A stretch of 64,000 nucleotides of DNA from the IMG/VR virus record IMGVR_UViG_3300045996_002337, positions 285,661 through 349,660 of that record. One strand, 5' to 3'. The translations under genes were made by a program, and so were the position numbers. Position 1 is the first letter of the stretch, and every line of letters begins with the position of its first letter. The notes under the pieces are model-generated. The model searched no databases, was not told the origin of the DNA, and saw only the letters and a program-made list of their open reading frames with translations. Positions 16,642 to 56,864 of this stretch are shown in pieces.

Positions 16642-18738
16642 TTAACTTACTCCGTGACCGAAGCTTGTGAGTCGCATTCGCGTTGCGTCTCCACCTACGT
16701 ACATCGCGAGACCTGGTGAACCACCGGTGAGAGGCGTTCCATCAGTATAATCAATAGCTGCTGTCGTGCTACCGTTTAGATAGACTCGAATCCGTCCGTT
16801 CAAGCTAGTGATCTTAACCGTGTTTGGCCCAGTGAATGTCAAGCCGTGGGCCGTCGTGTCACTTACCTGTGCGCTTGCTCTGTAAAGCAAGATCGACGAA
16901 GAATTAAGGCGCACGTGGTATCCCTCACCTGCACCGCTCCGATGAATGTACAAGTATAAGGTTTCACCGTTAGCCGTGAACGTCGTACCACCAGCAAGCG
17001 TAGCTTGAGCTGCTTGGTTTGTGCCCGTCACTGAGCTTAGATATGGAGGATCGTTATGCTCAACATAGCCGTTGCCAGTTACCTGCAGCGCCGAGTTTGT
17101 TACCGCGTAGCGAGCGTCGCCACTCCAGTTTGAATCAATCTGCTCAAGTGTTGTGCCATTAGCTTGATTGAAGAGGATGGATGTGCCGATGGTCGGTTCA
17201 GTTCCATTTGGTTCCCCACCACCAGGTTCCCCACCACCAGGTTCCCCACCACCAGGTTCCTCTACTGGTGTGACTCCTGTTTCACCGAGCGCCCAAGATG
17301 GCAACGCAATCATGTACGATGATTTATCTGAGCGACTGCCTCCTTGGGTCAGTGGCATGTCAGATGCAAACAACACACGCGTAAAGTCGTTGTTTACAGT
17401 GCCGTGCGGTTCAGAGAAGTAATCCTCCTCGTCGGGCCGAACCTCAGTGTACGTGTATGCAAGGCGCTTTGGCGTTTCTGGCGTAGGAGTAAGCTTAGCT
17501 GCCATGATAACGCCATCTTTCCAAATCATTCCGGTGTTGTTTGGAAGATACCAATCTTTGGTGTAAGAACCAACTAAAACCCAGCCAGGGCGTTTAGTAG
17601 CAGTCCCACACATGTGCCACGCATAATCAGTACCGCCATAACCAGAGAACATTGGATATGCAACGCCATTGTCGAGGCGACGGTAGAAGAGATATCCATC
17701 GGGAACATCAGGCATATTACCGTCATTATAGTTCACGGATACATACACCTCGTTACCTTCAGCATCAATTGCCGTATCGGCGTGCTCGCCGTAGTAGCTA
17801 AGCTGGGTGAAGTTGCCGGTGTCCTTGTCGTAAGCTCGCGTTCCATCTGTAGTGTTGATGCCTTGTGCAGCTGCTTGCGCCATGGTGTAGCCTGATGCAT
17901 TTGACCAAGACACGATGGCGTACTTGCCCTTAGGGCTCGTAGAAATGTTGTTTGGCTTATTGGTAGTTGGCCAGCTTCTAGCAATTGTGTTTGTTTGACG
18001 ATCATACATGATAAAGCCAATCATGTTGAACTGTTCATCTTGACACGCAAGAGCCCACCAACGACCATCGTCACTCGGCCGACCTTCACCCTGAAATGAA
18101 ATTCGAGTTACGTTGTTCCAACCAAGAGCCGCCATGTGAGACGTAAAATCAAATGCTATCGTGCGAACTTTTGTTGACACATTGAAATCGTAAAAAACTA
18201 ACCCGCCATTGATATCGGTGCATGTGATGATGTTTGGATCTGTTGGATGCCACATCGGCTCACAGTCACCTGTTAGCTGCCATGTGTTGCTTGGAAGACC
18301 GAGCGCATTGGCTGCTGGTGAGGCGGTGCGCCCTCCGGGCAAGCGCACGAATGTGTTCGCATCGTAAAGATACCAAGCGCCACGTGACGACTGCGAAATG
18401 AATAGGGTGTTATTGCAGTTGAATGCCTGCCGGCGACTGTACTCATGGCGATTATGGGTAGCATCTCCGTCAACATCTGCTAAGGAAGTAGCTCTGAAAA
18501 TCTTTGTTCCAAAGGTGGGTTCAGTGAAACTTGGAACCGTGATGGAGCTTGCCTTCGATGCTGGCTTTAGCACCTGCTGTCGCGTGAGATACGTCTGATT
18601 CTGAACAGGGCGCCAAGAAGTATCATAGAGCGCGTCGAAGGTTTTAGCCACATTGCCACGAACCACGGGGGGTGCAACTCGCGGCAACGCATTTCTTACC
18701 GCGCGTTGGATCTGAGAAAACATGAAGCGCTTTGTCAT
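16642..18738 (-). CDS. Beta-propeller (oligogalacturonate-lyase/TolB-like) protein with C-terminal ConA-like lectin domain; paralog 1
   Basis: FTEPTFGTKIFRAT...RHEYSRRQAFN, WHPTDP, EGRPSDDGRWW; GGGEP linker; C-terminal domain shared with paralogs 2 and 3. Confidence 0.6.
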   Translation of the reverse strand: MTKRFMFSQIQRAVRNALPRVAPPVVRGNVAKTFDALYDTSWRPVQNQTYLTRQQVLKPASKASSITVPSFTEPTFGTKIFRATSLADVDGDATHNRHEYSRRQAFNCNNTLFISQSSRGAWYLYDANTFVRLPGGRTASPAANALGLPSNTWQLTGDCEPMWHPTDPNIITCTDINGGLVFYDFNVSTKVRTIAFDFTSHMAALGWNNVTRISFQGEGRPSDDGRWWALACQDEQFNMIGFIMYDRQTNTIARSWPTTNKPNNISTSPKGKYAIVSWSNASGYTMAQAAAQGINTTDGTRAYDKDTGNFTQLSYYGEHADTAIDAEGNEVYVSVNYNDGNMPDVPDGYLFYRRLDNGVAYPMFSGYGGTDYAWHMCGTATKRPGWVLVGSYTKDWYLPNNTGMIWKDGVIMAAKLTPTPETPKRLAYTYTEVRPDEEDYFSEPHGTVNNDFTRVLFASDMPLTQGGSRSDKSSYMIALPSWALGETGVTPVEEPGGGEPGGGEPGGGEPNGTEPTIGTSILFNQANGTTLEQIDSNWSGDARYAVTNSALQVTGNGYVEHNDPPYLSSVTGTNQAAQATLAGGTTFTANGETLYLYIHRSGAGEGYHVRLNSSSILLYRASAQVSDTTAHGLTFTGPNTVKITSLNGRIRVYLNGSTTAAIDYTDGTPLTGGSPGLAMYVGGDATRMRLTSFGHGVS
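17210..17260. repeat. 15-bp tandem repeat x3 encoding (GGGEP)3 linker
   Basis: ggttccccaccacca at 17210, 17225, 17240. Confidence 0.9.
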
Positions 18739-20177
18739 ACGTTCTTACCTTTGATTGCGAAGGCAATGCCACCCACGGGGGTTCCGTTATTACTTTGACC
18801 CGTGAATGCTGGTGTATATGTTCCGGTAGATGTTACTTGTTTGCCAACCACGATGATTTGATTCTGCATGTTAGAACCGTTGTTGCTGTTTGGCGCACCC
18901 GTACCTTCAATGAGCGGCCATGCTGCGTCATACACCATCATGTCTGCACTTTCGTACCAGCTGCCAAAGTAAAGAATCAGATCATGGGAATATGTGGTCG
19001 GCTCAAGAGCAACAGAGACGGGTAGACTATCCCCGTTGTAATACGTGTCTACAAATCCTGGGGTTCCATCAAAAATGGCCGCGTCGTAGTTCTGCACGCG
19101 CATTGCCACAAGCCCTTTGTAATCACCTGAAGAGCCAGTGATCGTAATAGAGCCTGCTTGCGTCGCAACACCGGTAAAGCAGTTGAATGCGAGATCTGCA
19201 TCAATGCCAACATCGGTGGCAATCGCCTTGTTGAATGTGATACCTGGGGCCGTAATCGCTGTCGTTGGCATGTTGCCCGCCGCGTATGTGCTAAAGCCCG
19301 CAACGATCAAATCGCCAACTTGAACATCAGCGAGGGTTACGGTTGCTGGCGTGCCAACTCCATTCACATAGTTAACTTGAGGCGTGCCTACGATAGAAGG
19401 GGCCGTTGGGGCTGTAGCTGGTGGTTCAGCAACTGGTGCAACGGGGATTGGACGGACGCGCTTCACTGCCTCTGCCGCCATACCACCAATAACAGCGTAA
19501 CCTGCATTTCCCGGGTGGGTGTAATCATCTGCTGTACCATCCGAGCGCGCCCAAAGACCAGTCGCAATGAAAGCCTCAGGCGTCCATACGTTTGCAGCGA
19601 ACATGTTTGCAAACACCGGATACGCCGCCACATCACAGAGAATGTCTGCGTACTCTGCCCAATGTGTACGCATTAGATTATTTGCTTGGATAATTGCTGC
19701 ATTGCGACTATCAGCCCACGCCTGACCTTCGCCTGCAGGAACAGCACCAGCAGGCGTGGTTGTCATCGTGATGATGGTCAGCTTTGCGCCCTTTGTTTTG
19801 GCAGCAGCTTTTCTAGCAAGGCAGTAGTTTGCCCACGCTGTATGTGATGCCGTTGCATTGAAGTTGTTTGCCTTGAGGTCATTAATGAACTCGTGAACAA
19901 TCAGAATGTTGTGCTTCGTCGCGTCTACATCTGCGTCAATTGTTGCTGCTTGCGCCAGCATAGTACCAGCGCCTGCATTAGTGGCGATGCTCATGCCCGC
20001 CACCGCTCTATTAACAAGGGTGATCCCCTTGCCGTTGAGCGGCTGCTTGGTCTGCATAACGCCTTGCCAGCGGGTTGAGGTACCGCTCGCACCAACTCCA
20101 GCACCAAGGCTGTTGCCAGCCGTGACGATCTTGAAGTCGGTGGAAGAGAGCTTAGCTCTCGGAAAAAGGCGTCTCAT
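18735..20177 (-). CDS. SGNH/GDSL-family esterase with C-terminal beta-sandwich; putative fibre-associated
   Basis: Block I KIVTAGNSLG, block II NRAVAG, block III HEFIND, block V DYTHPGNAGY. Confidence 0.75.
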   Translation of the reverse strand: MRRLFPRAKLSSTDFKIVTAGNSLGAGVGASGTSTRWQGVMQTKQPLNGKGITLVNRAVAGMSIATNAGAGTMLAQAATIDADVDATKHNILIVHEFINDLKANNFNATASHTAWANYCLARKAAAKTKGAKLTIITMTTTPAGAVPAGEGQAWADSRNAAIIQANNLMRTHWAEYADILCDVAAYPVFANMFAANVWTPEAFIATGLWARSDGTADDYTHPGNAGYAVIGGMAAEAVKRVRPIPVAPVAEPPATAPTAPSIVGTPQVNYVNGVGTPATVTLADVQVGDLIVAGFSTYAAGNMPTTAITAPGITFNKAIATDVGIDADLAFNCFTGVATQAGSITITGSSGDYKGLVAMRVQNYDAAIFDGTPGFVDTYYNGDSLPVSVALEPTTYSHDLILYFGSWYESADMMVYDAAWPLIEGTGAPNSNNGSNMQNQIIVVGKQVTSTGTYTPAFTGQSNNGTPVGGIAFAIKGKNV

Positions 20178-20178
20178 A

Positions 20179-22179
20179 TTATGCGAATCCAGTTACACGT
20201 GGCTGGCAGACGCGGCGTGCAGTTGTGCTGTACGTGGTGTGGAAGTTGAGCGACAAGGTTGCAGCAGTGGTGGTGCCAAACGTGTGACGCACGGTGCTTG
20301 TTGCCCAGTCGTCAGTGGTTGTCTCAATTGTGAGCGTACTGCCAACTCGACGAACACCAACTCGTGTTGTTGGGCTGGCTGTTAGAGTAGTGAGCGCAGC
20401 GCTCATGGTGATACTGTTCTGAGCCCATGTAACGGTGCCAGTGCTTCCAAGTTGAACAAGGAAGTCAGCTTGACCATAAGGACGAGATGCCGGTGCGGTT
20501 GCATCAAGGGCAAGCATCGAGCTCGTGCTTGTTGCTTCAGGGAACTGCATTTCGGCGAAGAAGTCACCTGCCGCGGTACCAGTAACGACACCCAGCGCGG
20601 TGTTGCTTGTACCTGCTGAAGTCGCCGCGTAAATTTCATCACCCAATGAGGTCATGTTGACCATCGATGAGAATACTACTGGAGTTCCCGTAGTGCTGCC
20701 GCCGGCCGCTGCGGCTGTTGAGACGTTCAGCAGGTCAGCATAAGGGCCAGTGCCGGCCGAATTAACTGCGGCCACGCGAACGTCATACGCCGTTGAAGCA
20801 GTAAGACCCGTGATTGTTGCCGTTGTGGCCGTGCTTGTGCCATCTGCGAACGTTGTCGGGCTGGCAAAAGAAGTGCCCGCGGTTGCGTATTGAATAACGT
20901 AGTCAGTCATCGTTCCAGCTGGTGCTGTCCACGATAGAGAGATGGTGTTCGCGGTCGTACCGGTTGAAGCCAGGTTCGTTACTGCGTCAGGAGCTGTCGC
21001 TGGAGCGGGTGCGGGCGGTGTTGGGGCCGGGGCTGGTGGTGCAGGAGTTGGGGCGACAGCATCTTGAGCTTGCGACCAAGCAAAGTGATTTGCGTCGCCA
21101 TTATGCCAGAAATCCAACTGGTTTCGAACGCCTGCAGTGTTAAGGTATCCAGCGTTGCTATCCCACGCGGTCGCGCCCACGATCGTCGGAATATTGACAC
21201 CATCGGCAATCACAAGCATTTCAGATTTTGCACCAAGCGCTCCGCCGGAAATTGTCAGCGTTGTGGGCCCTGTTACAGTGAACGGCGCGTAAACTGTTGA
21301 TTGCGCAAGTGAGAGAGAAGTTCCTGCTGCCGCCGTAGCAAATGGTGTGGCAGCAATAGTGAGTGTGTTACCAGCATCATTATATGTGAGCGTGATGTTC
21401 GCACCCGCCTGCAAGAGCGCGGCGATGCGGTCGTCAATCGTCTCTGACTTGACTGTCCAGGTTGCTCCAGAGGCCGAAACAATAACATCGCCCTTGTCAC
21501 CATCCGTTACGCCAGCACCGCCCCCACCAGCTTCCACGTTTGGTTGAAGCCAGACTGCAGCACCACCGACTGGATTTGAAAGCACAAACAGCTTGCTGTT
21601 CGCAGTATTCAACCAAATAGATCCAAGAGCATAGCCTTTTGTTTCATCGTCGGTAACTGTCGGATCAGTTGTTGCGCTGAAGTTGTTAAGCGCCTGCGTC
21701 TCTCCAACTACCCAGTAATCAGTGCCGTCAAAGATAAACGAAATTTTCAAGCGGGCATTGGGCAGCAGCTTAAATGAAGTGATGGACGCGTTCTGCGCCA
21801 ATGAAATGCATGGAGGAATTGTAATGGTGCGAATTGTAGCACCACCGTTCGTGATCGTCCAATTGAACTGTTGGCCCGGCGAGGGAGTTCCACCAAACGT
21901 GAACTCGGTATCTGCTGCAACGTCGAGTGTTTGATTCTCACCAACTGCAACTTGAATAACGTTGCCGGCAGTGTTCACCGGAGCACTAACAGTTGCGCCT
22001 GGCATCGTCACAACACCAGTGAACTGTGGCGAGGCCGAGTTGGCCTTTAGCGCCAACGCTGCAGTGACTGCTGTACTGACTGGTTTATTTGCGTCAGATG
22101 TGTTATCAACGTTGGCAAGACCCACAGCGGCCTTAGTAGCAACTGTGGTCTCAATTGGAAATGATGTAATGGTAGCCAA
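20179..22179 (-). CDS. Tail/head fibre protein with fibronectin type III domain
   Basis: KAAVGLANVDNTSDANKPVS and DGDKGDV fibre motifs; FN3 (ISLSWTAP...YVIQY...GLTASTAYDVRVAAVN); Pro-rich linker. Confidence 0.75.
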   Translation of the reverse strand: MATITSFPIETTVATKAAVGLANVDNTSDANKPVSTAVTAALALKANSASPQFTGVVTMPGATVSAPVNTAGNVIQVAVGENQTLDVAADTEFTFGGTPSPGQQFNWTITNGGATIRTITIPPCISLAQNASITSFKLLPNARLKISFIFDGTDYWVVGETQALNNFSATTDPTVTDDETKGYALGSIWLNTANSKLFVLSNPVGGAAVWLQPNVEAGGGGAGVTDGDKGDVIVSASGATWTVKSETIDDRIAALLQAGANITLTYNDAGNTLTIAATPFATAAAGTSLSLAQSTVYAPFTVTGPTTLTISGGALGAKSEMLVIADGVNIPTIVGATAWDSNAGYLNTAGVRNQLDFWHNGDANHFAWSQAQDAVAPTPAPPAPAPTPPAPAPATAPDAVTNLASTGTTANTISLSWTAPAGTMTDYVIQYATAGTSFASPTTFADGTSTATTATITGLTASTAYDVRVAAVNSAGTGPYADLLNVSTAAAAGGSTTGTPVVFSSMVNMTSLGDEIYAATSAGTSNTALGVVTGTAAGDFFAEMQFPEATSTSSMLALDATAPASRPYGQADFLVQLGSTGTVTWAQNSITMSAALTTLTASPTTRVGVRRVGSTLTIETTTDDWATSTVRHTFGTTTAATLSLNFHTTYSTTARRVCQPRVTGFA

Positions 22180-22200
22180 ATTATTCTCCTGAGAACGCTC

Positions 22201-22206
22201 TATTTA
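22201..22206 (-). promoter_or_regulatory. Late promoter TAAATA
   Basis: Intergenic, upstream of fibre gene. Confidence 0.6.
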
Positions 22207-22209
22207 AGG

Positions 22210-25200
22210 TTACTGCTGTGTGGTCAAGAAGTTTCCGTTTGAATCAGTTAGGAAGTTTCCGTTTGAATCTGTCAAGAAGACTTCATCACTCGGCGCTCCT
22301 GTGCTTGCTTCACCATTATGGCGGAAGTCTGAAATTGTTACGTTCGCTGGTACGCCGTTTGCAAAGATTCCAAAACCCGGATATCCACCAGTTAATGGTG
22401 TCGTATCAGTATAGTCAATGCTCGGCGTGCTAGATCCATTGAGATAAACGCGAACACGGCCAGCGAAGGTAGTCATACGAACGGTGATGCCAGACGCGGG
22501 GATATCAAAGCCGTGTGATTGAGAGCCTGAGAGTGTGGTTCCACGGTAAAGCTGAATGGAACCTGGGAGCACACGAACTTGATAAAAGTTATTGCCACCT
22601 GAGTTGTTAGCATACAAATATGCTTGCTCTCCACCTTCCGCCCAAGCACCACCACCAGCTGCCAGTGTAAACTGCGCAGCTTGATTATTGCCGATAGTTT
22701 TTCCAAGCAGGACGGTTCCTTCGGTGTACCCGTTTCCAGCGGCCCGCATTGTCGAATCTGTTACCGCATAGGATGTAGAGTCGCCAAACCAATCGGCGTC
22801 AATTGCTTCAAGCGTAGTTCCATTTGCTTGGTTAAACGTTACGATGGTCGTTGGCGTTGGCTCTGAGGCTGGAAGCTCGACGGTAGAAGTGTTTGAGTAC
22901 GCAACAACATCAGGCCCTTGGTTGTTGGAACCAGTGACCCGTAAACGCCACTCACCTGCAACATCGAGTGTTGGACTAAGCACCGTAAAGCTGCTGTCGG
23001 TCCAAGTGCCAGAGACATTTCGCTGCCACATGAAGGCGAGAGTTGGCGCCGGGTTTCCAGTCCAAGTTCCTGCATCACCAACCATTGCAGTGCCGACGTT
23101 TCCAGTTGGATTAATCGACGGGGCGACAGTGTTTGCGGTGGCTGACAACGGCGCGGTTACGATAACATTCGACGCGGTGCTGAGTGTTCCACCAACGTTT
23201 GTCGCGCTTTCAAACCAACGATAATAAACGCCGTTCGGCGTGCCGCTCGGGATAACGTATGTTGACCCAGTTGCTGCTGGTGCAATCGCTGTCCAAGTCG
23301 TTCCATCGGCTGAAGTTTCCCATGCCCCGCTAACTATTGGAGTCGGCACGCCGACATAGGATCCAAGAACTCGTGAAATGGTTCCATCAGCGGCGTAAGT
23401 GCCAGATACACTCGGTGAAGCGGTGCGCTGTGGCGCAGAGCTTCCAGCCACAGGGAATGCGTCTGACGGCAGGATAAGGGCGTATGAAACTAGCTCGTTA
23501 GACCCATCAAAGTTGCTGGCAAAAACGATGCGTGTCAAGTCTTGGTTTGGCGTTGCATGAGGTTCGGCTTCATATGGCGAACCAGTGGAGCGGTGATGGG
23601 CAAGACGATAGAGCTTAGCTGGACGCTCCATTGTAGGTGGTTGAATTTCAGCAACAACGATTTGACCGTCATATGAACCGTTACCAACGCCGGAGTATTT
23701 GGAAAGAACAACAAAGCCTGGGCGCGAGGTGCAGGTACCGGAAATGTGGAAGCCGTCGCCTGTTCCACCGTTAAACGGTAGGAACGGAATTTCCCAAGTG
23801 CCACCACCATCAAGACGGCGCACAAAAATAGTGTCGCGCGTTAGACCATCTGCGGTTCCATGAAGCGAAATGGCAACAAGAACTTCAACAATCTCGTCAT
23901 TTTCATCGATATAATAAGCAAGGTCGCTATGTTCACCTAGAACGCTCAGCGCGGTGAACGAAGAAAAATCTGCAGTATACGCTCTTGCGCCTCGGGCCTG
24001 TGTAATCGGTGCTGCTTGTTCATCTGCCATGTTGGCAGCTGCGCTCGTGTACCACGATGGCACCGCATATTCGCCAGTAAATGACGTGCTAATGTGGTCA
24101 GGTGGGTTAGTTCCGCCAACAACAACGCTGCCAATGATTTGGTCAAGACCAAGATCATACATGATCAGGCCAATGTGAATATCATTCTGGTCATTGACCA
24201 TCAGCGCCCAACGATTCCAATCATGTGAAGGGCGCCCTTCACCTTTGAAATAGGCCTTTCGCGCATTTAACCAGACGCCGCCCATTTCTTGAAATTTTGG
24301 CGTAAGATCAAAAAGCACGGACGTTGTGTGGGTGAAGACGTCACGCACATACCAGATCAATCCACCATTTCTCGCAGTGTACGCAAGCTTTGCGCGATCC
24401 GTTGGATGCCAAATTGGATCACAGCCGCCCGCCAATCCAGGAATCGCTCCGTTTCCTGGAGGTCCAATACGGCCAGAATAAATTAACTCGAGTGAAATCG
24501 CGTCAAATTGGTACCAGAAACCATTTGACGCCTTCATCAACATGCGAGACCCATCAGCATTGTATACCTGACGCCGGGAATAATCATGCCGGAAATTGGT
24601 AACGGTTGCATCGGGGGCGTCGACGATAGAAACTAGCTTACGGACCTCGACATTAAATGCTGGATCTGTGTAACCGCCCACAAACAGGTTTTCACTTTTA
24701 GCAGGTGCCGTCACCGCGGGTTGGGTGACCGCTGCAGTGCCCTCATCAGCTACCCAGCTCACGTCATAGAGGTGGTCAAAAATTGGAGAGCCAAGGCCCC
24801 GGGCCGGGTTAGTCACCTGCAAATGAAAATATGAGGTCGACATCAACGCGCCGTCTGACAACGTGTAAGGTACCGTGAAATCACCAACGAAGTCAAGCGT
24901 TGGCATAAATGTGAAGCTTTGGTTAGCGTTTAACGTCAACGAGCCATTGGCCAGCGTAATTGATTCGCCGACAGAAATACCAATACCATTCACCTCTACA
25001 ATTGAAATACTTGAGCCAGCATCAATATCTGAATCGTTTTCTAGTGGCCAAAATACTACCGGGGTATTGATGATCGTTGTCGCAAAGTCGCCAATTGATC
25101 GAGGCGCGTCATTGACTGCGATGATTGTGATTGTCAGAGTTGATTGCTTTACGTCTGTGCCGTTTGTCGCTTGATAGGTGATCAGCGGCACCTCACCATT

Positions 25201-25518
25201 CCAGTCAGGAGATGGGGTGAACGTCCATGCCCCCGTTGCGGCCAACGTAAAACGGCCGGTGCTTGGAATGTCACATGGCTGCCCCACCGCAAAAATGCCA
25301 GTCACGCCGGCCACGGTAAACTGCGTGGCCGTCAGTGTGCCAGTTGTTGCAATGTCGTTTTGAAGTACATTTCCTGAAAGAGCGTTGTCTTCGAAACCAG
25401 AGGCGACGTCGGGGTTCAAAGTTAGACTTGATGGAGGCGTTAGATTATATGCATCTAAAACCGTCGTTGCACCGTAATGAATTTTACCCTCACGGTTGTT
25501 AAATCTAAAACCTGGCAT
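22210..25518 (-). CDS. Large adhesin-like virion protein: 2 cadherin/VCBS-like Ig domains, beta-propeller, 2 Ig-like domains, ConA-like domain; paralog 2
   Basis: EDNALSGNVLQND, AVNDAP..GDF, RHDYSRRQVYN, WHPTD, GEGRPSHD; C-terminal FLTDSNGN repeat. Confidence 0.7.
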   Translation of the reverse strand: MPGFRFNNREGKIHYGATTVLDAYNLTPPSSLTLNPDVASGFEDNALSGNVLQNDIATTGTLTATQFTVAGVTGIFAVGQPCDIPSTGRFTLAATGAWTFTPSPDWNGEVPLITYQATNGTDVKQSTLTITIIAVNDAPRSIGDFATTIINTPVVFWPLENDSDIDAGSSISIVEVNGIGISVGESITLANGSLTLNANQSFTFMPTLDFVGDFTVPYTLSDGALMSTSYFHLQVTNPARGLGSPIFDHLYDVSWVADEGTAAVTQPAVTAPAKSENLFVGGYTDPAFNVEVRKLVSIVDAPDATVTNFRHDYSRRQVYNADGSRMLMKASNGFWYQFDAISLELIYSGRIGPPGNGAIPGLAGGCDPIWHPTDRAKLAYTARNGGLIWYVRDVFTHTTSVLFDLTPKFQEMGGVWLNARKAYFKGEGRPSHDWNRWALMVNDQNDIHIGLIMYDLGLDQIIGSVVVGGTNPPDHISTSFTGEYAVPSWYTSAAANMADEQAAPITQARGARAYTADFSSFTALSVLGEHSDLAYYIDENDEIVEVLVAISLHGTADGLTRDTIFVRRLDGGGTWEIPFLPFNGGTGDGFHISGTCTSRPGFVVLSKYSGVGNGSYDGQIVVAEIQPPTMERPAKLYRLAHHRSTGSPYEAEPHATPNQDLTRIVFASNFDGSNELVSYALILPSDAFPVAGSSAPQRTASPSVSGTYAADGTISRVLGSYVGVPTPIVSGAWETSADGTTWTAIAPAATGSTYVIPSGTPNGVYYRWFESATNVGGTLSTASNVIVTAPLSATANTVAPSINPTGNVGTAMVGDAGTWTGNPAPTLAFMWQRNVSGTWTDSSFTVLSPTLDVAGEWRLRVTGSNNQGPDVVAYSNTSTVELPASEPTPTTIVTFNQANGTTLEAIDADWFGDSTSYAVTDSTMRAAGNGYTEGTVLLGKTIGNNQAAQFTLAAGGGAWAEGGEQAYLYANNSGGNNFYQVRVLPGSIQLYRGTTLSGSQSHGFDIPASGITVRMTTFAGRVRVYLNGSSTPSIDYTDTTPLTGGYPGFGIFANGVPANVTISDFRHNGEASTGAPSDEVFLTDSNGNFLTDSNGNFLTTQQ
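22224..22279. repeat. Imperfect 24-bp tandem repeat encoding FLTDSNGN-FLTDSNGN-FLT
   Basis: gaagtttccgtttgaatc occurs twice. Confidence 0.8.
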
Positions 25519-25545
25519 CAGAAGTTCCCTGTTATTTTCAGTGTG

Positions 25546-25551
25546 TATTTA
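25546..25551 (-). promoter_or_regulatory. Late promoter TAAATA
   Basis: Between the terminator hairpin and paralog 2 start. Confidence 0.65.
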
Positions 25552-25553
25552 GG

Positions 25554-25581
25554 ATTCTGAACGGCTTTCGCCGTTCAGAAT
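25554..25581. terminator. Terminator hairpin after paralog 3
   Basis: ATTCTGAACGG-CTTTCG-CCGTTCAGAAT. Confidence 0.7.
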
Positions 25582-25582
25582 T

Positions 25583-28500
25583 TTAGGATACGCCGTGCGC
25601 GATGTGACTGATTCTGACTCTGCTTGAATCCGCACCAGGGTACGAGAACAGGCCAACATATCCGCCAGTGATTGGATCTGCATCTGTGTAATCAATGATC
25701 GGTGTTGCGGAACCATTGATGTACGCCCTGATTCTACCGTAATAACTCGTCATGCGAAGAGTCATGTCTGTGGTGAGCAGGTCTACGTTGTGAGCAAGTG
25801 GGCCAACAGCCGGCTCTCCAAAATTGTCCGCGCGGTAGAGACGCAGCTGGGTGTCACGAATTTCAATCTTGTATCCAGTTGTAGACACACCTGTCGTGTG
25901 AATCATAATCGTCAAGTGGTTGCCACCCGGTCCAATGTTTGCTGGCGCAGCAAGCGTAACTTCAAACGCTTGATTGTTTCCTCCGGACGTTGTGAGCCAG
26001 ATAGGACCGGTGTTATAGCCCTCCGTTGTGCCGTTACGAAGCATGTTGTCGACGATGACATAGTTGCTTGTAATGCCGTCCCAGTTAGGATCAATCATCT
26101 CAATTGACGTGTCATTGGCGGCGGTCAAGTTCACAACGTTTGTTGGAATAGGCTCAAAAACCGGCTCAGAAATTGTTGCGTTGTTTGAGAATGCAACAAT
26201 CGGCCCACCCTCGCTATTCGAAGCTGAAACGCGAAGGCGCCAAACGCCCGCCGGTGAAAGCAACGCGCTCCTCGTTGTGAACGCCGTGTCAGTCCATGAT
26301 GCGGCGACGTCACGCTGCCACATGTATGTGAATGTCGGTGTTGGGTTTGCAGACCATGATCCGCGATTACCAACGCTAAGAACGTCCGTCCGTCCATTGG
26401 TGATAGACGGTGCAACTAGGTTCACTGGGGCAGAAATTGGTGCAACTGTTAGCGCGTTTGAGAGGGCGGCTGCAAAGCCGTTGGCATTCGCTGCCATTTC
26501 ACGCCAACGATACATAGTGCCGTTCGTGATGCCACCAGGAATTACATACGTTTCAGAGCTCGCGCCGGTGATGTCAGTCCATGAAGAACCGGAGTTTGTA
26601 GAAATTTGCCATTTACCCGTGACTGTTGCCACAGGCGTCGAATCGTACGTACCCGCAGTACGCGTGAGTGTGCCACCGGGCGAAACTAGACCTCCAATTT
26701 CTGGATCTGTAAGCTTCGTCGGTGGGTATGTGCCAGCGGTTGGAACTGCCCATGAAGGTAGCCCAATCATAAGCTGCGGGTACGGCATGCCTGAATTGTG
26801 GAAATCACTACCAAAGAGAATACGTGTCAGATCACGGTTTGCGGTCGCAAATGGTGTTGCCCAATATTCACCGCTGTCTGTTCTATGGTGAACGAGTCGG
26901 TATGCACGGGGTGATTCAGTAGTGAGCTCAATCAGCATGATCGTGCCGTTGCGCCAGGAAGCAGGTGTACCACCAGCGTTGTAGCTGATAAGCGCCCAAC
27001 CCGGCTTTCCATAATGGCATCCGCTAAAGTGCATGGCGTTGTTGCCGCCCGGAGCATACGCGCTCAGACCCTCATAGATGTAAGGAACGCCCGTTTCAAT
27101 GTCGCGGAAGTATAGATCACCGTCTAGCATGTCCATAAATGGACTGTAAGATGCGCTAACCCAAACATCTCTACCATTCACATCGACTGCCAAGTCTCCG
27201 TGCTGGCCACTTTGGTCAAGAACCGTAAAGACGCTGCCAGAGATAGCGTCAATTGGATATGCTCTGGTGCCGGCAAACTGTGTGATATCGCGGCCCGCTT
27301 CCAGCTCCATTGTGTTGCCCGCGATGCCGCCCTTACCACCAAGTACAGCCCATGCACCGCTGTGGCTAACACCAGCCCAGTCAATTGCACGGTTAGTAAC
27401 GACGTAGTCAAGGATGGTATCTGTCTCGCGGTCATAGGTAATTACGCCAATGTAAGAATCATCCGAGCCGCGGGCCTGCAGGCACCAAAAGCGACCATCC
27501 GCGGATGGTCGACCCTCACCACCCATGTTTAGACGTGTGGCATTTTGAAAACCTGGTGGCATGCGTCCTTCAAATGAGAACAGCGGTGAGATTTCACCTG
27601 TTCTAATATCAATCTCTTGGAAGAACAGATTCAAGCCACGGTTGTTGAACCAAAACTTGTGTGGATCCGTAGGGTGCCAAACAATTTCAGCATCAGCGGC
27701 GACAGTTGGCATGCGTCCGTTCACCCCACCTGGTACGTCAATGTGCGCGAAGGTGTTGGCGTCGTAGAGGTGCCACCAGCTGTTTTGCGCAGTTGCAACA
27801 AATCTAGTTGAATCACAGTTGAAACATTGACGCTTCGAGTAGTCGTTTCGAATGTAGCCAACGGTGTCAGCGGTGTCAGTTACATCCGTGACCATGAATA
27901 CCTTGGTGCCAAATGCCGGATCTGTGTACTTGAAATCCGATGTGCTCGTTGATTTAACTGTAGGTTTAACCAAGACCTCGCGCGTGATTACATCTTGCGT
28001 TGAGTTCAGCGCAAAAGTTTCTTCATAGATGCTGTCAAAGGTGGTTGCCGAACCATTCGCCGCCAGGGTCGGAAGCACTGTGATAGTGATCGTGGAGCTT
28101 GCTTGCCCAACGCCATCAGTGATGGAATATGGAAATGAGAATGTGCCGCTATAGCCCGGTGTCGGCGTAAACGTAAGTACGTTATTTGCGCCGATAGTCA
28201 CCGTTCCGTTTGGCACGTTGATAACATTACCCTCAACTGGTGCTTCACCGTTGACTTCATAAAGCGTGAGAACATCGGCGTCAGGATCAACGTCGTTTAG
28301 AATTGGTGAAAAGGTAACCGGCGAATTAAAGGATGCCGTCACCGAATCAGTGGATGCGGTAGGCGCATCCTGCACCGGAGTGATTGTGATTGATAGCGTT
28401 GTTTGGTTCACCGCGTCGCCATTGGTCGCCTGATACGTGACCAATGGAACGTTGCCGCGGTAGTTCGGCGCCGGTGAAAACGTCCAAGCGCCCGTCGCCA

Positions 28501-28774
28501 AAATTCGAAGACTACCGACACCGGTAATAGTTGCAAGCGCGCCAGCGGCGAAGATGCCAACAACTCCAGCAACTGTGAATTGACTAACAACGAGATTACC
28601 AACCGCGGTAAAGTCGTTTGTTAGCACGTTGCCAGTAAGGACTTGATCTTCAGGTCCAGTTACTGCATCGGCGACCAGGGTAATTTGATCACCAGGAAGG
28701 TGGTTAACGTCCAGTACGGTGATATCACCGAATTGAATTTTACCCTCCCGGTTGTTGAATCTAAATCCGCTCAT
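25583..28774 (-). CDS. Large adhesin-like virion protein with the same architecture as 22210..25518; paralog 3
   Basis: Near-identical N-terminus M(S/P)GFRFNNREGKI, EDQVLTGNVLTND, RNDYSKRQCFN, WHPTDP, GEGRPSADGRFW. Confidence 0.7.
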   Translation of the reverse strand: MSGFRFNNREGKIQFGDITVLDVNHLPGDQITLVADAVTGPEDQVLTGNVLTNDFTAVGNLVVSQFTVAGVVGIFAAGALATITGVGSLRILATGAWTFSPAPNYRGNVPLVTYQATNGDAVNQTTLSITITPVQDAPTASTDSVTASFNSPVTFSPILNDVDPDADVLTLYEVNGEAPVEGNVINVPNGTVTIGANNVLTFTPTPGYSGTFSFPYSITDGVGQASSTITITVLPTLAANGSATTFDSIYEETFALNSTQDVITREVLVKPTVKSTSTSDFKYTDPAFGTKVFMVTDVTDTADTVGYIRNDYSKRQCFNCDSTRFVATAQNSWWHLYDANTFAHIDVPGGVNGRMPTVAADAEIVWHPTDPHKFWFNNRGLNLFFQEIDIRTGEISPLFSFEGRMPPGFQNATRLNMGGEGRPSADGRFWCLQARGSDDSYIGVITYDRETDTILDYVVTNRAIDWAGVSHSGAWAVLGGKGGIAGNTMELEAGRDITQFAGTRAYPIDAISGSVFTVLDQSGQHGDLAVDVNGRDVWVSASYSPFMDMLDGDLYFRDIETGVPYIYEGLSAYAPGGNNAMHFSGCHYGKPGWALISYNAGGTPASWRNGTIMLIELTTESPRAYRLVHHRTDSGEYWATPFATANRDLTRILFGSDFHNSGMPYPQLMIGLPSWAVPTAGTYPPTKLTDPEIGGLVSPGGTLTRTAGTYDSTPVATVTGKWQISTNSGSSWTDITGASSETYVIPGGITNGTMYRWREMAANANGFAAALSNALTVAPISAPVNLVAPSITNGRTDVLSVGNRGSWSANPTPTFTYMWQRDVAASWTDTAFTTRSALLSPAGVWRLRVSASNSEGGPIVAFSNNATISEPVFEPIPTNVVNLTAANDTSIEMIDPNWDGITSNYVIVDNMLRNGTTEGYNTGPIWLTTSGGNNQAFEVTLAAPANIGPGGNHLTIMIHTTGVSTTGYKIEIRDTQLRLYRADNFGEPAVGPLAHNVDLLTTDMTLRMTSYYGRIRAYINGSATPIIDYTDADPITGGYVGLFSYPGADSSRVRISHIAHGVS

Positions 28775-28798
28775 TTTTATCCTTCAGGTATGGTAACG

Positions 28799-31700
28799 TT
28801 ACGCAACAAGAGCCACTGCAGTCCAACCAATTGTTTTGCCCAATTCGCCGGTCACCTGAAGTACAACTGAATCTACTCCTTCTAGGGGAGTTACCGTCCA
28901 TGTATCAGAAGCAACTTCTTTAATTTCATCTGTTTGTGAAGTGGCAGAAATAATTGTAACCGTGCCACCGACATTTTTTGCTGCAAAGAAAATTCTGGCT
29001 GAGTATGCCGCACCGCTTGCAAGTTCAAATCCATTAACTTGCGCGGTGACACTAACGACCCTGTTCAGTGGCACGTCAAATGTGAGTGCTGTTGTGGGGG
29101 TCGCATCGCCGGTTGAGGCCGTTCCTGTCTTGACGGGATTATTAATCCATGTCGTGGCAAAATCGCTGTCCGTCTGTTTAACCAAGAGTTGACCAGTAGA
29201 CCCGCCAGCAGCAATACCTGGACCCGGTGGACCCTCTTCACCATCTGCACCAGCAGGACCTTGGATACCCTGAATGCCTTGGATACCCTGAATACCTTGA
29301 GGACCTGGATCGCCCTGTTCACCTTGGATACCTGGGATACCCTGAGGACCTTGCTCACCCTGTGGGCCAGTGATACCAGTAGATGCAATCCATGAAACAC
29401 CGTTAAACAGCAGAAGCGAGTTAGTTTCGGGTGATGGGACAGAAACATCAGTGAGGGCATCAAGTGTTGTTGCGCCTCCACCCCCAGAACCACCAGTTGG
29501 TGCCGCTGCGATCCACAGACCATTGTCGTATGTCAGAACGTGGCCATTTGCCGGAGTCGTTGTGAACACAACGTCATCAAGATCCACCAGATCAAGGGCG
29601 CCACCGCCTTGGGCCGCTTGAGCGACCCATGAAGTACCATTAAATGTGAGAACATCACCGAAGGTTGGGCCTACGATGCTAACATCAGTGAGCTCAGTGA
29701 GAGCATCTGGTACAGTTCGCGCGATCCATTGTCCGCCGGTATAACCGAGAAAGTTACCTTCCGCTGGTGCACCGACCGCGACGTCAGTAAGATCATTTAG
29801 CGTCTGAGCTACAATTCCTGGAACCCATGTTCCATTGTTGAAAACCAGCGCGGCACCATTTGTAGGAGCTGTCGTGGTTAGGTCAACGTCCTGCAGAGTT
29901 TCGAGGTAAAAATCTGGAAGCGGGGTGGCGGCCCAGCCTGCTTCACCATAGGCCAGGAAGGATCCAGGGCCTGGATTCGGAGCAAAGACGTCTGACAGAT
30001 CATCAAGCGACGAAGGAACAGAAACTTCAATGTGACCAGGTTCAAGTTCATTTACGACGGGGCCGGTGAACGAAAGTGTGTGCGTTGTGACAGGTGTCGC
30101 ATCATCCAGAAGAACTGTAAGACCGGCACCGCCCACCCATGAGGTGCCGTTAAATCTAAGCACGTCGCCTAGTGCAGGAGCTGAAGCATCTACGTCTGAC
30201 AGCTCATCAAGCGCCAGCGTAAATCCAGTGTTCAGCTTACCATCTAGAGCCCCTTGAAGTCCAGTGACATCTGCAATGATGTGAGTATGGGTAGTTAGCG
30301 CACGCCCATCAAGTTCACTCTGAAGATTGATAACTTCATCGATGGCATGGGTGTGACCGACGTTCGACTTACCAGCGAGAACCTGGGTAAGTGAATCACC
30401 TGTCGCAATATCACTGAGGGCCGTTTGATCTACAGAGACAAAGATCCGATCAAATGCCAACAGGCCAGTGTCACGATCAAATTTGTCGTTCAGCGCGTCC
30501 TGAAGTCCAGTTACCTCAGGGATGACGTGGTCATGATTGATAAGCGCGTAACGATCATCATGGTTGTGATTGACGAGCGCGTAGCGATCATCAAAGTTTG
30601 CATCTACATCCAACTTTCCATCAAGCAGGCCCTGTAAATCAGTGATGTCGGCCGCTGCGTGGGTGTGGCCGACATTGGACTTGCCTGTTTGGAGCGCCGA
30701 GATCAGGCCGTTGATCGTCGTGATCTGGCCAGGCACCGCTGCCACTGTAACGGCTTGGGCAGTGGTCATGTGGCCAGGTCCGGTGGCGGTTGCCGGTGGC
30801 ATGGAAATTGTTACAACACGCTCACCAATGCCGTTCAACGAATCTGTCGTTTGGACTGGCACTGAACCGGAAATAATGACGGCTTCGGCCTCGGCGGAAT
30901 AAACTTGTGGCTGTGTCTCAGCGTCGACATCAAAGACGATGGTGTTTCTGTTCTTGATGAAACCTACACGATAGGCAAGTAGACCACCAGGGCGAGATGT
31001 GGTAAGCTGGCCAGCGCTATTCGAGTACACGGCCTTACCAATGTGGCCAGACCAATCCCACTGGTCATACGTAATGTCACCACTTTGGGTTAGTACGCCA
31101 ATCTCGTTGGTTGAGAGCGCCTCTTGAATAACACCAACTGGGGTGCGTTCAAACAGGAGCGCAGGGTCTGAGCTAGCAAGCGAAACCGTATCTTCGCCTG
31201 AAAAGTAGACGAGCGACATTGCCGGAATGTTCTCGCCCGCCCGAACCGGGATAAAGGCATTTGGTGGAACAGCAAGAACGCCGGCGGTACCGACAGTTGT
31301 GCGAATTCTAACTGGAGTATCCGTGGTTAGAAATTCACCAACAGACGTACGCAGCGGACGAAGTTGCGAATCGACCATGATAAAGCCAGGATTCGAGGGC
31401 GCATTAACCCAGACCTGAGATCCAGCTGTACGAGGGAAGATCTGGCCCGCGCTACCGTTTTCAACTCGACCAGCAAACACACGAACGCGATCAATCCACT
31501 TGTTCGAAGATGTTCTCCAAACCCGCATCTTGTTTGTGTTAAGATCAAACCAGTGGAGATCATTCACCGGTGAGGTCGGTTCAACTGATGAGGTGACTGG
31601 CTCGACGGTCGTAATGCCATAAGAAACCGCCGCGGTTAGAAGGTCAATGTCCCAGTAGAGATAGTTGTCCTTGTTGGCAATGAGCGGACCCCAAGCATTC

Positions 31701-31882
31701 GGCACCGTTACATCAAACACCTGCAGGTAATCAGAACCGCCATGGGCAAAGGCTACGGTGGTGGGCGTTGGTGCTACGTTTAGAGAAACATAGCCCGATG
31801 TCGAAGAGGGCAAAAGGAACTGTGGCAGTCCGTTGACGTCTTTTTGATATGATACGAGGCCCTGACGAAAAGTGATTCTCAT
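28799..31882 (-). CDS. Long tail fibre protein with HxH repeats, LxDLxDV repeats and collagen segment
   Basis: HTHAAADITDL, HTHAIDEV, HTHIIADV; multiple LDDLSDV-type repeats; ~17 Gly-X-Y triplets. Confidence 0.8.
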   Translation of the reverse strand: MRITFRQGLVSYQKDVNGLPQFLLPSSTSGYVSLNVAPTPTTVAFAHGGSDYLQVFDVTVPNAWGPLIANKDNYLYWDIDLLTAAVSYGITTVEPVTSSVEPTSPVNDLHWFDLNTNKMRVWRTSSNKWIDRVRVFAGRVENGSAGQIFPRTAGSQVWVNAPSNPGFIMVDSQLRPLRTSVGEFLTTDTPVRIRTTVGTAGVLAVPPNAFIPVRAGENIPAMSLVYFSGEDTVSLASSDPALLFERTPVGVIQEALSTNEIGVLTQSGDITYDQWDWSGHIGKAVYSNSAGQLTTSRPGGLLAYRVGFIKNRNTIVFDVDAETQPQVYSAEAEAVIISGSVPVQTTDSLNGIGERVVTISMPPATATGPGHMTTAQAVTVAAVPGQITTINGLISALQTGKSNVGHTHAAADITDLQGLLDGKLDVDANFDDRYALVNHNHDDRYALINHDHVIPEVTGLQDALNDKFDRDTGLLAFDRIFVSVDQTALSDIATGDSLTQVLAGKSNVGHTHAIDEVINLQSELDGRALTTHTHIIADVTGLQGALDGKLNTGFTLALDELSDVDASAPALGDVLRFNGTSWVGGAGLTVLLDDATPVTTHTLSFTGPVVNELEPGHIEVSVPSSLDDLSDVFAPNPGPGSFLAYGEAGWAATPLPDFYLETLQDVDLTTTAPTNGAALVFNNGTWVPGIVAQTLNDLTDVAVGAPAEGNFLGYTGGQWIARTVPDALTELTDVSIVGPTFGDVLTFNGTSWVAQAAQGGGALDLVDLDDVVFTTTPANGHVLTYDNGLWIAAAPTGGSGGGGATTLDALTDVSVPSPETNSLLLFNGVSWIASTGITGPQGEQGPQGIPGIQGEQGDPGPQGIQGIQGIQGIQGPAGADGEEGPPGPGIAAGGSTGQLLVKQTDSDFATTWINNPVKTGTASTGDATPTTALTFDVPLNRVVSVTAQVNGFELASGAAYSARIFFAAKNVGGTVTIISATSQTDEIKEVASDTWTVTPLEGVDSVVLQVTGELGKTIGWTAVALVA
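29219..29372 (-). repeat. Collagen-like (Gly-X-Y)n repeat
   Basis: GPQGEQGPQGIPGIQGEQGDPGPQGIQGIQGIQGIQGPAGADGEEGPPGPG. Confidence 0.9.
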
Positions 31883-31975: not shown

Positions 31976-32518
31976 TTAATCTTGGCCTTTTTTGACAGTC
32001 TTCTGTTCAAAGATGGAGACGTCTGGAGTTTCCGTGGTTGTCACGGTCGTTTCATAGATCGACCCATCAGTTGCCTGGCCTGAAGCATCCTTGATAGAGG
32101 TTTCATTGTAGTTGTACTTAGCAGCGATAAACTTGCTGAAGCCTTCAATAGAACCCATGTAGATCAAATAAATGCTAAAGATTTCAGAGGTGAGCGTGCC
32201 GGCAAGCCCAGTCTTGACAATAACCCAGGTTGAAGCGATGCCAGCCACGAACTGCAGCACCTTGGTCGATGACACTTTTCGACCATCCTTGGTAAACATG
32301 TCAGCAAAATCTAGGCGTGCAGAGGTTTGGATCCGGTAAAACATGACCAGAATGCCAATGATGATGCCGAGGATCAGGATGGTCATCAGGTTGAACTGAT
32401 AACCAAAGGCGGTAATTAGGAAGGCGTTGGTGTTTACTGCGTCACTGATTGCGGCGTTTGTGACGATGGCCTCAGCCACTTTTTCTGCGGCTTGTGCTAC
32501 TTGTTCTGTTGTTTCCAT
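31976..32518 (-). CDS. Membrane protein, holin candidate
   Basis: 3 predicted TM segments; late promoter at 32547-32552; start METTEQ. Holin function is inference. Confidence 0.5.
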   Translation of the reverse strand: METTEQVAQAAEKVAEAIVTNAAISDAVNTNAFLITAFGYQFNLMTILILGIIIGILVMFYRIQTSARLDFADMFTKDGRKVSSTKVLQFVAGIASTWVIVKTGLAGTLTSEIFSIYLIYMGSIEGFSKFIAAKYNYNETSIKDASGQATDGSIYETTVTTTETPDVSIFEQKTVKKGQD

Positions 32519-32574
32519 TTGGGGGCTTTCTGATGAGTGGACCTGATATTTATGAGGTCCACGCCCCGGGCAAC

Positions 32575-32595
32575 AAAAAGCCGCCCGAAGGCGGC
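32575..32595 (-). terminator. Intrinsic terminator with UUCG tetraloop
   Basis: GCCGCC-TTCG-GGCGGC-TTTTT on minus strand. Confidence 0.85.
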
Positions 32596-32633
32596 GGCTA
32601 TCTAGCAACTAATGCTATAATTGTTGCGCGCGT

Positions 32634-37911: not shown

Positions 37912-38505
37912 TTAGAACGAGCGTTTTGGATCTGTCGAAAAGACGCGCATCTCGTTGATGCGACGAAGCCACCCATTCAGGTACTTCGCCTGCGAAGAAT
38001 TGTTCTGAACGATTTGACGATAGAACTGTTCACGCTGATTGCAGATGCTTTGGCAAAGCGTAATCGGGTTAAGTTGCTTTACCTTAGCGATGGTGACAGG
38101 ACCAACGATTCCGTCAGGAGAAACCCCGGCGGCACGTTGAAGGAACATGTTCGCGCGCTTGATGCCGTGGTTAACACAGCCGTCAAAGTGTAGCACCGCG
38201 ACACGTCCTGGTAGCTGTTCACACTTGCCTGCCAACCAGTAGCGGACATAGTAAACGGCTTTAGCTTGGTCCCAGGTTAAGCGGGTGATGTTCAGATCTG
38301 GGTTGGCATTTCGCGCCACGCCAAACTTTGTCTCACCGCCTCTATCATCAGGATCATTCACATAACCGACTGCTCTGCGGTTCGCCGTTGTGTTGATCAA
38401 CCCCTGCTCAACTGCAGGGTGCGCTCGATTCCAAAAACCACCGACCTCATAAAGCATGGCGTGGTTAATGGCTTCTTCAAAAGCATGGGGGTATTGGGCC
38501 ATCAT
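37912..38505 (-). CDS. Endolysin, glycoside hydrolase family 108 with C-terminal peptidoglycan-binding domain
   Basis: EVGG...YVNDPDDRGGETKFGV, FDGCVNHG, LQRAAGVSPDGIVGP, YLNGWLRR; late promoter at 38525-38530. Confidence 0.9.
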   Translation of the reverse strand: MMAQYPHAFEEAINHAMLYEVGGFWNRAHPAVEQGLINTTANRRAVGYVNDPDDRGGETKFGVARNANPDLNITRLTWDQAKAVYYVRYWLAGKCEQLPGRVAVLHFDGCVNHGIKRANMFLQRAAGVSPDGIVGPVTIAKVKQLNPITLCQSICNQREQFYRQIVQNNSSQAKYLNGWLRRINEMRVFSTDPKRSF

Positions 38506-56129: not shown

Positions 56130-56864
56130 TTAGGTTTTGTACCAACCCTCAACCTTTTTGTTGAGGGTTTCCATGTCAAAAATTTCTGGCACGAGATACT
56201 TTTCTTTGGTATCTTCAAGGTGCTTTAGCATGCGTTGGCCAACAGGGTTCTGCACAGGAGAGTCATAGAAGTTTGTAACTTCCTTGAAGATCTTCAGCAT
56301 TGCAGCGTCGTCAAGTTCGCCCGGGTTGTTGTTCACTTCCTTGAAGAACTCAAATTTGCCTTTAAAGTACGCCTTATTGGCCCGAGAAACTTCATGCACC
56401 TTGTCAATGAACTCAGGGTTCACTTCACGGCCAATCTCTTCACCGCGCTTCTTTGCGCGGGCCTGGGCTACTTCAAGCTCTGTATCAACAAATACCATGC
56501 CGACGTCATAGCCAAGTGATTCAAGAATGCCTGCCCGGCCGAGGATGTTTGATGCATCGTTGGACGTACCATCGACGAACAGCGGCAGCATGCCGTTCAA
56601 ATAACCAGCGAGCGCGTTCTTTGTTAGGGGGCGGGTGCGGTCGCGGAAGAACGACTTCCATGTTTCGTCATTCGATGGCATGTCGAATTTCTTTGAAAGA
56701 AACTCAGTTGCCTTATCGGTGTTGACAACCTTCGGTGAAATTGGCCCTTGCAGCTTTGAGACAGTGTATGACTTACCTGCGCCCGGAATGCCAACAACGA
56801 AAACCGCTTTCAAAATGCCGCGGTCGTTGATGCTTTCGTCTAGAAATTGTTTGAACGTAATCAT
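56130..56864 (-). CDS. P-loop kinase (zeta-toxin/AAA_33-like) with capsid-targeting-like N-terminus
   Basis: MITFKQFLDES; AVFVVGIPGAGKS, VNTD, LFVDGT, ARAKKR. Confidence 0.75.
   Translation of the reverse strand: MITFKQFLDESINDRGILKAVFVVGIPGAGKSYTVSKLQGPISPKVVNTDKATEFLSKKFDMPSNDETWKSFFRDRTRPLTKNALAGYLNGMLPLFVDGTSNDASNILGRAGILESLGYDVGMVFVDTELEVAQARAKKRGEEIGREVNPEFIDKVHEVSRANKAYFKGKFEFFKEVNNNPGELDDAAMLKIFKEVTNFYDSPVQNPVGQRMLKHLEDTKEKYLVPEIFDMETLNKKVEGWYKT

Follow-up and report, generated by a model that had tools for sequence, protein, structure and literature searches.

Among the depolymerase folds of phage receptor-binding proteins, the beta-propeller ranks second in frequency (PMC11326577). 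Within this class, which includes the K1F endosialidase and the proteins that DepoScope labels 'n-bladed beta-propeller', an enzymatic-fold propeller follows an N-terminal anchor and precedes a C-terminal domain, and the protein that carries it is one among several receptor-binding alternatives of its phage. Propellers with seven blades also form the PL22 oligogalacturonate lyases (Ogl; PDB 3PE7 and 3C5M, Pfam PF14583), and viral clusters without annotation whose seven-bladed folds resemble PL22 have been mentioned, although not studied (bioRxiv 10.64898/2026.08.04.742344). Here we analyze four proteins, A to D, encoded in the final 64 kb of the 349,660-bp IMG/VR virus record IMGVR_UViG_3300045996_002337 (positions 285,661–349,660, hereafter the window; the completeness of the record is estimated at 97%), all of which contain a homologous propeller domain of about 400 residues that in A, B and C is combined with a ConA-like C-terminal tip.

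The locus shares with the described depolymerases both the placement of the propeller and the presence of several alternative proteins in one phage. However, the propellers of the window belong to a different family, are associated with an immunoglobulin (Ig)/cadherin stalk and a ConA-like tip, and have an activity that is predicted only. They also differ in the number of blades, since sialidase-type phage propellers have six, compared with the seven PD40-like blades found here. The interpretation that we favor, with a probability of roughly 45%, is that A, B and C are virion tail fibers of a jumbo myophage that carry a lectin tip and a polysaccharide-processing propeller, while D is an exported copy. 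An earlier, preliminary description of this DNA had presented the architecture as unlike that of the usual beta-helix tailspikes, but propeller depolymerases are already an established class (PMC11326577).

A diverged family of seven-bladed propellers

All four open reading frames (ORFs) that had been singled out are present on the minus strand: A at 16642–18738 (698 residues), B at 22210–25518 (1102 residues), C at 25583–28774 (1063 residues) and D at 61052–62509 (485 residues). BLASTP confirms both the common domain of about 400 residues and its high divergence, with identities of 30–38% and pairwise E values between 4e-39 and 1e-74. Protein A aligns with C at 34% identity across 502 residues (E 1e-74), with B at 35% across 474 residues (E 2e-74) and with D at 32% across 427 residues (E 1e-54); D in turn matches B at 30% (E 4e-39) and C at 33% (E 6e-51), and B and C are 38% identical over their full length. 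On these alignments, the similarity among the four propeller copies is far above chance. When a profile of the four copies was run against the entire 349,660-bp genome, it recovered A, B, C and D and nothing else (the propellers of C and B scored E values of 1e-200 and 2e-198, respectively). The domain comprises residues 30–488 of A (17275–18651), residues 270–695 of B (23434–24711) and 268–685 of C (26720–27973), both placed by the four-copy alignment and the profile match, and residues 105–485 of D (61055–62197), placed by the alignment; all coordinates are on the minus strand.

Structure prediction bears out the proposed fold. An AlphaFold run with 143 aligned sequences modeled residues 30–488 of protein A with pLDDT values above 90 as a seven-bladed, PL22-like propeller, in which about 28 strands form seven four-stranded blades. 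The resemblance to oligogalacturonate lyases was recovered by Foldseek, where two PL22 lyases are the top matches in the PDB (E 2e-12, TM 0.62–0.65 by target), followed by generic WD40 proteins (5e-10). PL22 also ranks first among Swiss-Prot models and in a Foldseek-independent search of 48,161 chains, 6 Z units over binding scaffolds, and the nearest annotated neighbors by language-model features and Atlas structures are the PF14583 and PD40 families. Because these comparisons agree, the PL22-like assignment is correct at the level of the fold.

The term 'oligogalacturonate-lyase-like' therefore stands for the fold but not for family membership by sequence, as there is no match to PF14583 in proteins A–D at E values up to 10, nor in the six-frame translation of the genome at E values up to 1. 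Likewise, the propeller domain has no family match in Pfam, PHROG or NCBIfam, PD40 (PF07676) included, even at an E value of 10; profiles of the family did not reach 3pe7 and 3c5m among the PDB sequences at E values up to 10; and HMMER searches of PDB sequences with single sequences and profiles returned only chance blade-like matches. PF14583 was also missing, at an E value of 1e-20, from 301 genomes of the class of Pseudoxanthomonas kalamensis (genome G001, locus L074), as well as from five genomes carrying the propeller family. The Ogl and window propellers are superposable seven-bladed folds with 11–13% identity, a likeness that holds at the fold level and does not establish equivalence of catalytic residues. 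They differ in their setting too, in that Ogl is a stand-alone cytoplasmic enzyme whereas the window domain, predicted to be exported or fiber-borne, is fused to stalks and carbohydrate-binding modules (CBMs). The next nearest propellers by features and structure, those of TolB, PD40 proteins and the N-terminal region of DPP-IV, have in common with the window domain an SPDG-like turn in each blade, although their structural scores are below those of PL22. TolB itself serves as a scaffold for protein binding in the periplasm.

The sequence motifs that had been listed for the four proteins all exist, and they turn out to be one motif. FNxDxT, HPTDP, PSxDG, SPxG and NxDxTR, together with DxxG and PGW, are variants of a turn that occurs once per blade, precedes a strand in the model and constitutes the PD40/TolB signature. 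Upstream of each of these turns, at or just ahead of the preceding strand in the model of A, lies a conserved polar set. Counted over 143 aligned sequences and numbered as in protein A, it consists of Tyr100 (140/143) and Arg102 (133/143) at the first blade position; Glu160 (131/143), Trp163 (141/143) and His164 (105/143) at the second; Glu218 (138/143) at the third; Asp263 (107/143) and His264 (94/143) at the fourth; His319 (142/143) and Asp321 (138/143) at the fifth; His375 (140/143) and Ser377 (136/143) at the sixth; and Tyr440 (136/143), Glu443 (116/143) and either His445 (79/143) or Gln445 (44/143) at the seventh. Proteins A, B, C and D all retain the invariant core residues, while positions 264, 443 and 445 differ among them (Asn, Glu and His in A; His, Glu and His in B; Trp, Thr and Phe in C; His, Ser and Val in D). 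His319 and His375, as well as the frequent His264, His164 and His/Gln445, come one per blade and lie close to what would be the inner strands. Propeller enzymes, PL22 among them, hold their site at the mouth of the central channel, and that of PL22 reportedly consists of a Mn2+ ion held by histidines plus a catalytic base in a central pocket. The conserved set, to which the invariant His319 and His375 belong, points to a catalytic or metal site at the center of the propeller. Its residues would ring the channel mouth, a placement that follows from taking the strands concerned as the inner ones, as in PD40-type blades.

The preliminary description had also spoken of an expanded family. If this is read as a recent expansion within the genome, it is rejected by a tree of 143 domains, in which each copy is nearer to proteins from outside than to its paralogues in the window. 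One well-supported clade, with 45 members, contains A, B and C, but in three separate sub-clades, each with closer outside relatives (B, for instance, is 82% identical to P0191), and D belongs to the other clade, with 98 members. By this phylogeny, the copies either are paralogues of old standing or were acquired as separate modules.

The family extends well beyond this genome. In an exhaustive profile search, at least 3,155 clusters (50% identity) had a representative that matched at an E value of 1e-3 or lower (523 at 1e-30). Members are common in Lysobacterales, Burkholderiales and Myxococcota. A signal-like N-terminus is present in 188 of 319 relatives, and the bacterial members are mostly secreted or lipoprotein-like. 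Fusion partners include CBM60, LamG, PKD, FN3, Big_5, InlB repeats, F5/8-C and, once, PG_binding_1, a pattern typical, by analogy, of a catalytic module to which binding modules are attached; the genomic neighbors of a CBM60 fusion in Acidovorax are iron-related and uninformative. The chromosome of the root-associated bacterium Rhizobacter sp. LjRoot28 contains four tandem propeller paralogues within 8.6 kb (G003:C1:3033212-3041773, the L082 region) and a fifth 150 kb away, one of the paralogues having an in-frame TGA. The A/B/C-type domain has its best match in the genome collection, at 52% identity, on a 27,982-bp contig (L008) in a bin of Candidatus Peribacteria (candidate phyla radiation, CPR), which may be a mis-binned phage contig.

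Architecture and genomic setting of the four proteins

Proteins A, B and C end in a common domain of about 185 residues that is 37–46% identical among them and found in no other gene of the genome, as had been proposed. It occupies residues 517–698 of A (16645–17190, minus strand; 46% identical to B and recognized in addition by its language-model neighbors), 881–1071 of B (22306–22878, minus strand) and 873–1063 of C (25586–26158, minus strand; assigned by homology to the C-termini of A and B). An AlphaFold model of residues 693–1102 of B (m71b6451bcc7c, pLDDT 89) shows two Ig/FN3-like domains followed by a beta-sandwich, whose top structural match is the C-terminal tip of the central fiber gp20 of mycobacteriophage Douge (PDB 8ZDP). 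Further matches are the lectin domain of galactocerebrosidase, CBM66, GH16 glucanases, L-type lectins (ERGIC-53 and legume lectins) and the C-terminal domain of GH43. These matches to CBM66, GH16, L-type lectins and their kin are the reason why we call the tip ConA-like, in line with the preliminary description; it has no Pfam match at E values up to 10, and its language-model neighbors are PF06439 or GH43_C2. The tip domain of Douge binds mycobacterial arabinomannan and alpha-glucan fragments on glycan arrays (PMC13033339). However, the remainder of gp20 is unrelated to A, B and C, Douge has no propeller, and both its host and its glycan are different. The common xHG ending that had been described holds for A and C, which terminate in HGVS, but not for B, which has RHNGE and then a tail of 35 residues. 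Residues 1072–1102 of this tail (22213–22305) are unique to B, contain a tandem LTDSNGNF repeat and are modeled with low confidence.

The modules are mounted in two ways. C consists of an N-terminal anchor, a Big_9/cadherin stalk, the propeller, two Ig-like domains and the ConA-like tip, and B has the same architecture apart from its tail. The stalks seen earlier in both proteins are indeed Big_9/cadherin-like repeats, which span residues ~41–235 of B (24814–25398, minus strand; Pfam Big_9 2e-15, Cadherin_4 1e-14, Cadherin_5 4e-13, and the NCBIfam tandem-95 repeat) and the equivalent segment of C (28070–28654, minus strand), starting at about residue 40. Ahead of the stalk lies a putative docking segment, identified by a search of the genome against itself: the N-terminal 40 residues of B (25399–25518, minus strand) match the corresponding segment of C (28655–28774, minus strand). 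This segment is common to B and C, found nowhere else in the genome and better conserved than the remainder of the two proteins, although 'near-identical', as it had been called, overstates an identity of 59% over 38 residues. Between propeller and tip, B has two Ig/FN3-like domains (residues 693–880; 22879–23442, minus strand), supported by Foldseek matches to FN3/Ig tandems, and C an equivalent pair (26159–26722, minus strand). Protein A lacks the Ig stalk and begins with a short N-terminal helix that recurs in A-like relatives; in place of the Ig pair it has a flexible Gly/Glu/Pro-rich linker containing (EPGGG)x3 (residues 489–516; 17191–17274, minus strand; pLDDT below 50).

The genes of A, B and C do sit among fiber genes, as judged by Pfam and PHROG. 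Six tightly packed, co-oriented genes at 16642–31882 encode a PTR/collagen fiber, C, B, an FN3 fiber, an SGNH esterase and A. The first product (28799–31882, minus strand) is a tail fiber of 1027 residues without a propeller (PTR 1.7e-22, Collagen 1.4e-7, and many PHROG tail-fiber families), and the FN3 protein (20179–22179, minus strand; 666 residues) matches fn3 of Pfam at 7e-16 and PHROG tail-fiber families. The SGNH/GDSL esterase (18735–20177, minus strand; 480 residues) has a Lipase_GDSL_2 domain at residues 21–229 (37 bits against a cut-off of 32.9), and the stop of its gene overlaps the start of A. A metagenomic protein of 1356 residues, P0217, mirrors these two adjacent genes in a single chain composed of a GDSL esterase (residues 35–225), a propeller (561–983), Ig-like domains and a ConA-like tip; this fusion ties the overlapping esterase gene to the same job as A. 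A scan of the cassette for promoters and terminators gave no excess over chance.

Other genes of the window match PHROG families for ribonucleotide reductase, helicase, UvsX-like recombinase, single-stranded DNA-binding protein, clamp loader, terminase, endolysin, baseplate wedge and tail tube, from which we conclude that the record is a jumbo phage whose tail has a tube and a baseplate. Among isolates, the Xanthomonas jumbo myophage vB_XciM_LucasX is the only relative found; GenBank phages contain no near-identical DNA, and no sequencing runs are listed as containing the cassette. The cassette lies downstream of the ribonucleotide reductase genes, a position that is syntenic with LucasX and with a metagenomic contig of 310 kb, both of which have a single propeller protein. 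That of LucasX, the hypothetical protein LUCX_246, is genuinely homologous (its propeller, 44% identical, is followed by Ig-like domains) and is the only true relative among UniProt-derived viral models. In contrast to the three copies of the cassette plus D, LucasX has a single one, and no tail fibers are visible on it by electron microscopy.

In smaller phages, an A/B/C-type gene adjoins a beta-helix tailspike and a portal in one case, follows a portal and a fiber gene in another, and is found inside the structural module of a podovirus, and elsewhere beside fiber, adaptor and tail genes. These settings, read from gene content, support a virion role for proteins of the A/B/C type. A trio formed by a fiber-like protein, a protein of ~240–260 residues of unknown family and a propeller protein recurs in three unrelated smaller phages (L090 4868–8887, L104 7001–11251 and L092 7544–11254), near portal, adaptor or capsid genes.

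Protein D is built differently. It starts with a Sec-type signal peptide read from the sequence (62453–62509, minus strand; MKKIIIGLSMVVAAAAQAQ), continues with a Cys-containing domain of about 50 residues and a Pro/Thr linker, and ends with the propeller, without a ConA-like tip. The signal peptide, the small Cys-containing domain and the linker recur in many close homologues (P0001, P0004 and P0007 are among those with a signal peptide), and the identity of the propeller reaches 64% with metagenomic proteins and about 55% with proteins of Myxococcota and Burkholderiales. The proposal that D is one of the alternative virion appendages is at odds with its signal peptide and with its position in the clade that holds secreted bacterial proteins, from which it follows that D is probably not part of the virion; judged by these sequence features, it would most simply be an exported soluble form. 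The gene is flanked by two others on the minus strand that match the tail-tube family phrog_4542, one at 59557–60960 (8e-15) and the other at 62672–63250 (4e-42). The product of the former has a C-terminal extension of ~280 residues, rich in Ala, Gly and Ser, past the tube domain. A 45-kb phage contig (L088, 5739–8724) encodes a D-like protein that is 60% identical and lacks a signal peptide, between DUF7940 and DUF2514 genes and just after a tail-tip gene, with no recognizable endolysin nearby; DUF7940 is also found near a cell-wall hydrolase gene in L087.

Proposed function and competing readings

In the mechanism that we propose, the distal ConA-like lectin domain of A, B and C would bind a surface polysaccharide of the host, which the internal propeller would then process, its most likely activity being that of a lyase or hydrolase aided by a metal. 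B and C would present these modules on the Ig/cadherin stalk, docked through their common N-terminal segment, and A would carry them on its short helix and flexible linker. The site at the mouth of the propeller channel would be formed by Tyr100/Arg102, Glu160/Trp163, Glu218, Asp263/His264, His319/Asp321, His375/Ser377 and Tyr440/Glu443/His445. The adjacent SGNH esterase probably strips acyl groups from the same polymer, and three diverged versions may give the phage three glycan specificities. D, separately descended, would act on glycan of the envelope or outside the cell, either while infection is under way or once the cell has lysed.

A wider proposal, which we advance tentatively and at somewhat less than even odds, is that the ~400-residue domain founds a new CAZyme family of metal-dependent lyases or hydrolases distant from PL22. 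In phages it would be carried by monomeric Ig-stalked fibers, as a depolymerase other than a beta-helix, and in environmental and predatory bacteria (Myxococcota, Lysobacterales, Burkholderiales) it would be a secreted protein, in some cases encoded in tandem arrays. If so, a single genome displays three fiber-borne specificities plus a soluble exported form. A large family that has no name in Pfam, PHROG or NCBIfam would in this way be linked to a fold, to a probable site and to the attack on glycans, making it a candidate new CAZy family, and the repertoire of receptor-binding modules would gain an Ig-stalked propeller with seven blades and a PL22-like fold, which comes with a lectin tip and an esterase; this jumbo phage stacks several such modules in one variable island. 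Given knowledge of host and substrate, the family might be mined for depolymerases against exopolysaccharide (EPS)-forming bacteria.

Several points weigh against an interpretation of A, B and C as depolymerase fibers. The propeller has no link by sequence to PL22 or to any CAZy-type family, and Ogl is said to be a cytoplasmic, exo-acting enzyme, unlike a virion or secreted protein. Association with the virion is a prediction from gene neighborhood, and Ig stalks and propellers are mostly monomeric, whereas classical fibers are trimeric. Several of the 'conserved' residues are just the repeated blade turn and may be structural, and propellers are very often pure binding scaffolds.

This last point leads to the question of whether the propeller is an enzyme at all. 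As a non-catalytic lectin or scaffold, it would make A, B and C fibers with two binding modules and no depolymerase, and its ring of residues would hold a structural metal or one common sugar. Such a role is consistent with PD40/TolB-type families being the next neighbors, with the lack of an enzyme family matched by sequence and with the variation of the peripheral ring positions 264, 443 and 445 among the four copies. However, a site that determines specificity should vary, yet two His, two Tyr, an Arg, two Glu and several Asp are kept in 93–99% of the 143 sequences, although these are just 25–50% identical to A. The habitual joining of the domain to separate carbohydrate-binding modules, and a specific top match that is an enzyme and stands clear of the binding scaffolds, also speak for catalysis, and we find a purely binding propeller rather unlikely.

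It is less probable still that none of the four proteins belongs to the virion and that all are auxiliary enzymes (morons), either soluble or exported, which reshape the surface of the host or its biofilm and happen to be encoded beside fiber genes in a variable island. For D, the signal peptide, shared with many close homologues on phage-like contigs, fits this well, as do the location of the D-like gene of L088 between DUF7940 and DUF2514 genes after a tail-tip gene and the mostly secreted or lipoprotein nature of the bacterial relatives; the cassette, moreover, follows ribonucleotide reductase genes rather than baseplate genes. A, B, C and their clade, in contrast, have no signal peptides, B and C possess a dedicated common N-terminus and a stalk, the tip of all three resembles a solved fiber tip, and relatives recur within structural modules of podo-, sipho- and myoviruses. 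A further, very improbable reading is that the propeller targets peptidoglycan or another envelope component, as a virion-borne or secreted lytic factor. This idea draws on the PG_binding_1 domain of one relative (P0106), on the abundance of the family in predatory or bacteriolytic Myxococcota and Lysobacterales, and on the D-like gene of L088, which lies where lysis genes are expected and without a recognized endolysin nearby. Nevertheless, the window encodes an endolysin of its own (37912–38505), the fusion partners are mainly polysaccharide-type CBMs and Ig domains, and the nearest fold is that of a uronate lyase, while peptidoglycan contains no uronic acid.

Other features of the window

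The strongest terminator-like hairpin of the cassette region, a GC-rich stem followed by a T run at 32579–32599 (minus strand), is located just inside the TTG start assigned to an ORF at 31976–32608. The PHROG match of this ORF begins at residue 100, and its translation probably starts downstream of that TTG; the hairpin may mark the end of a transcription unit, just upstream of the fiber cassette.

At 51395–52927 and 52924–53706 (minus strand), two adjacent, overlapping ORFs each match the ATPase of the terminase large subunit (positions 92–265 and 107–261 of phrog_5989, respectively), and the nuclease part is present only in the longer one; the pair may represent a terminase gene that was duplicated or split. 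Lastly, three successive ORFs of ~245–260 residues at 56130–58425 (minus strand) each cover a different stretch of phrog_12810 (788 positions, function unknown), and one of them also matches ATPase/kinase families; the trio looks like a fragmented gene or a tandem family.

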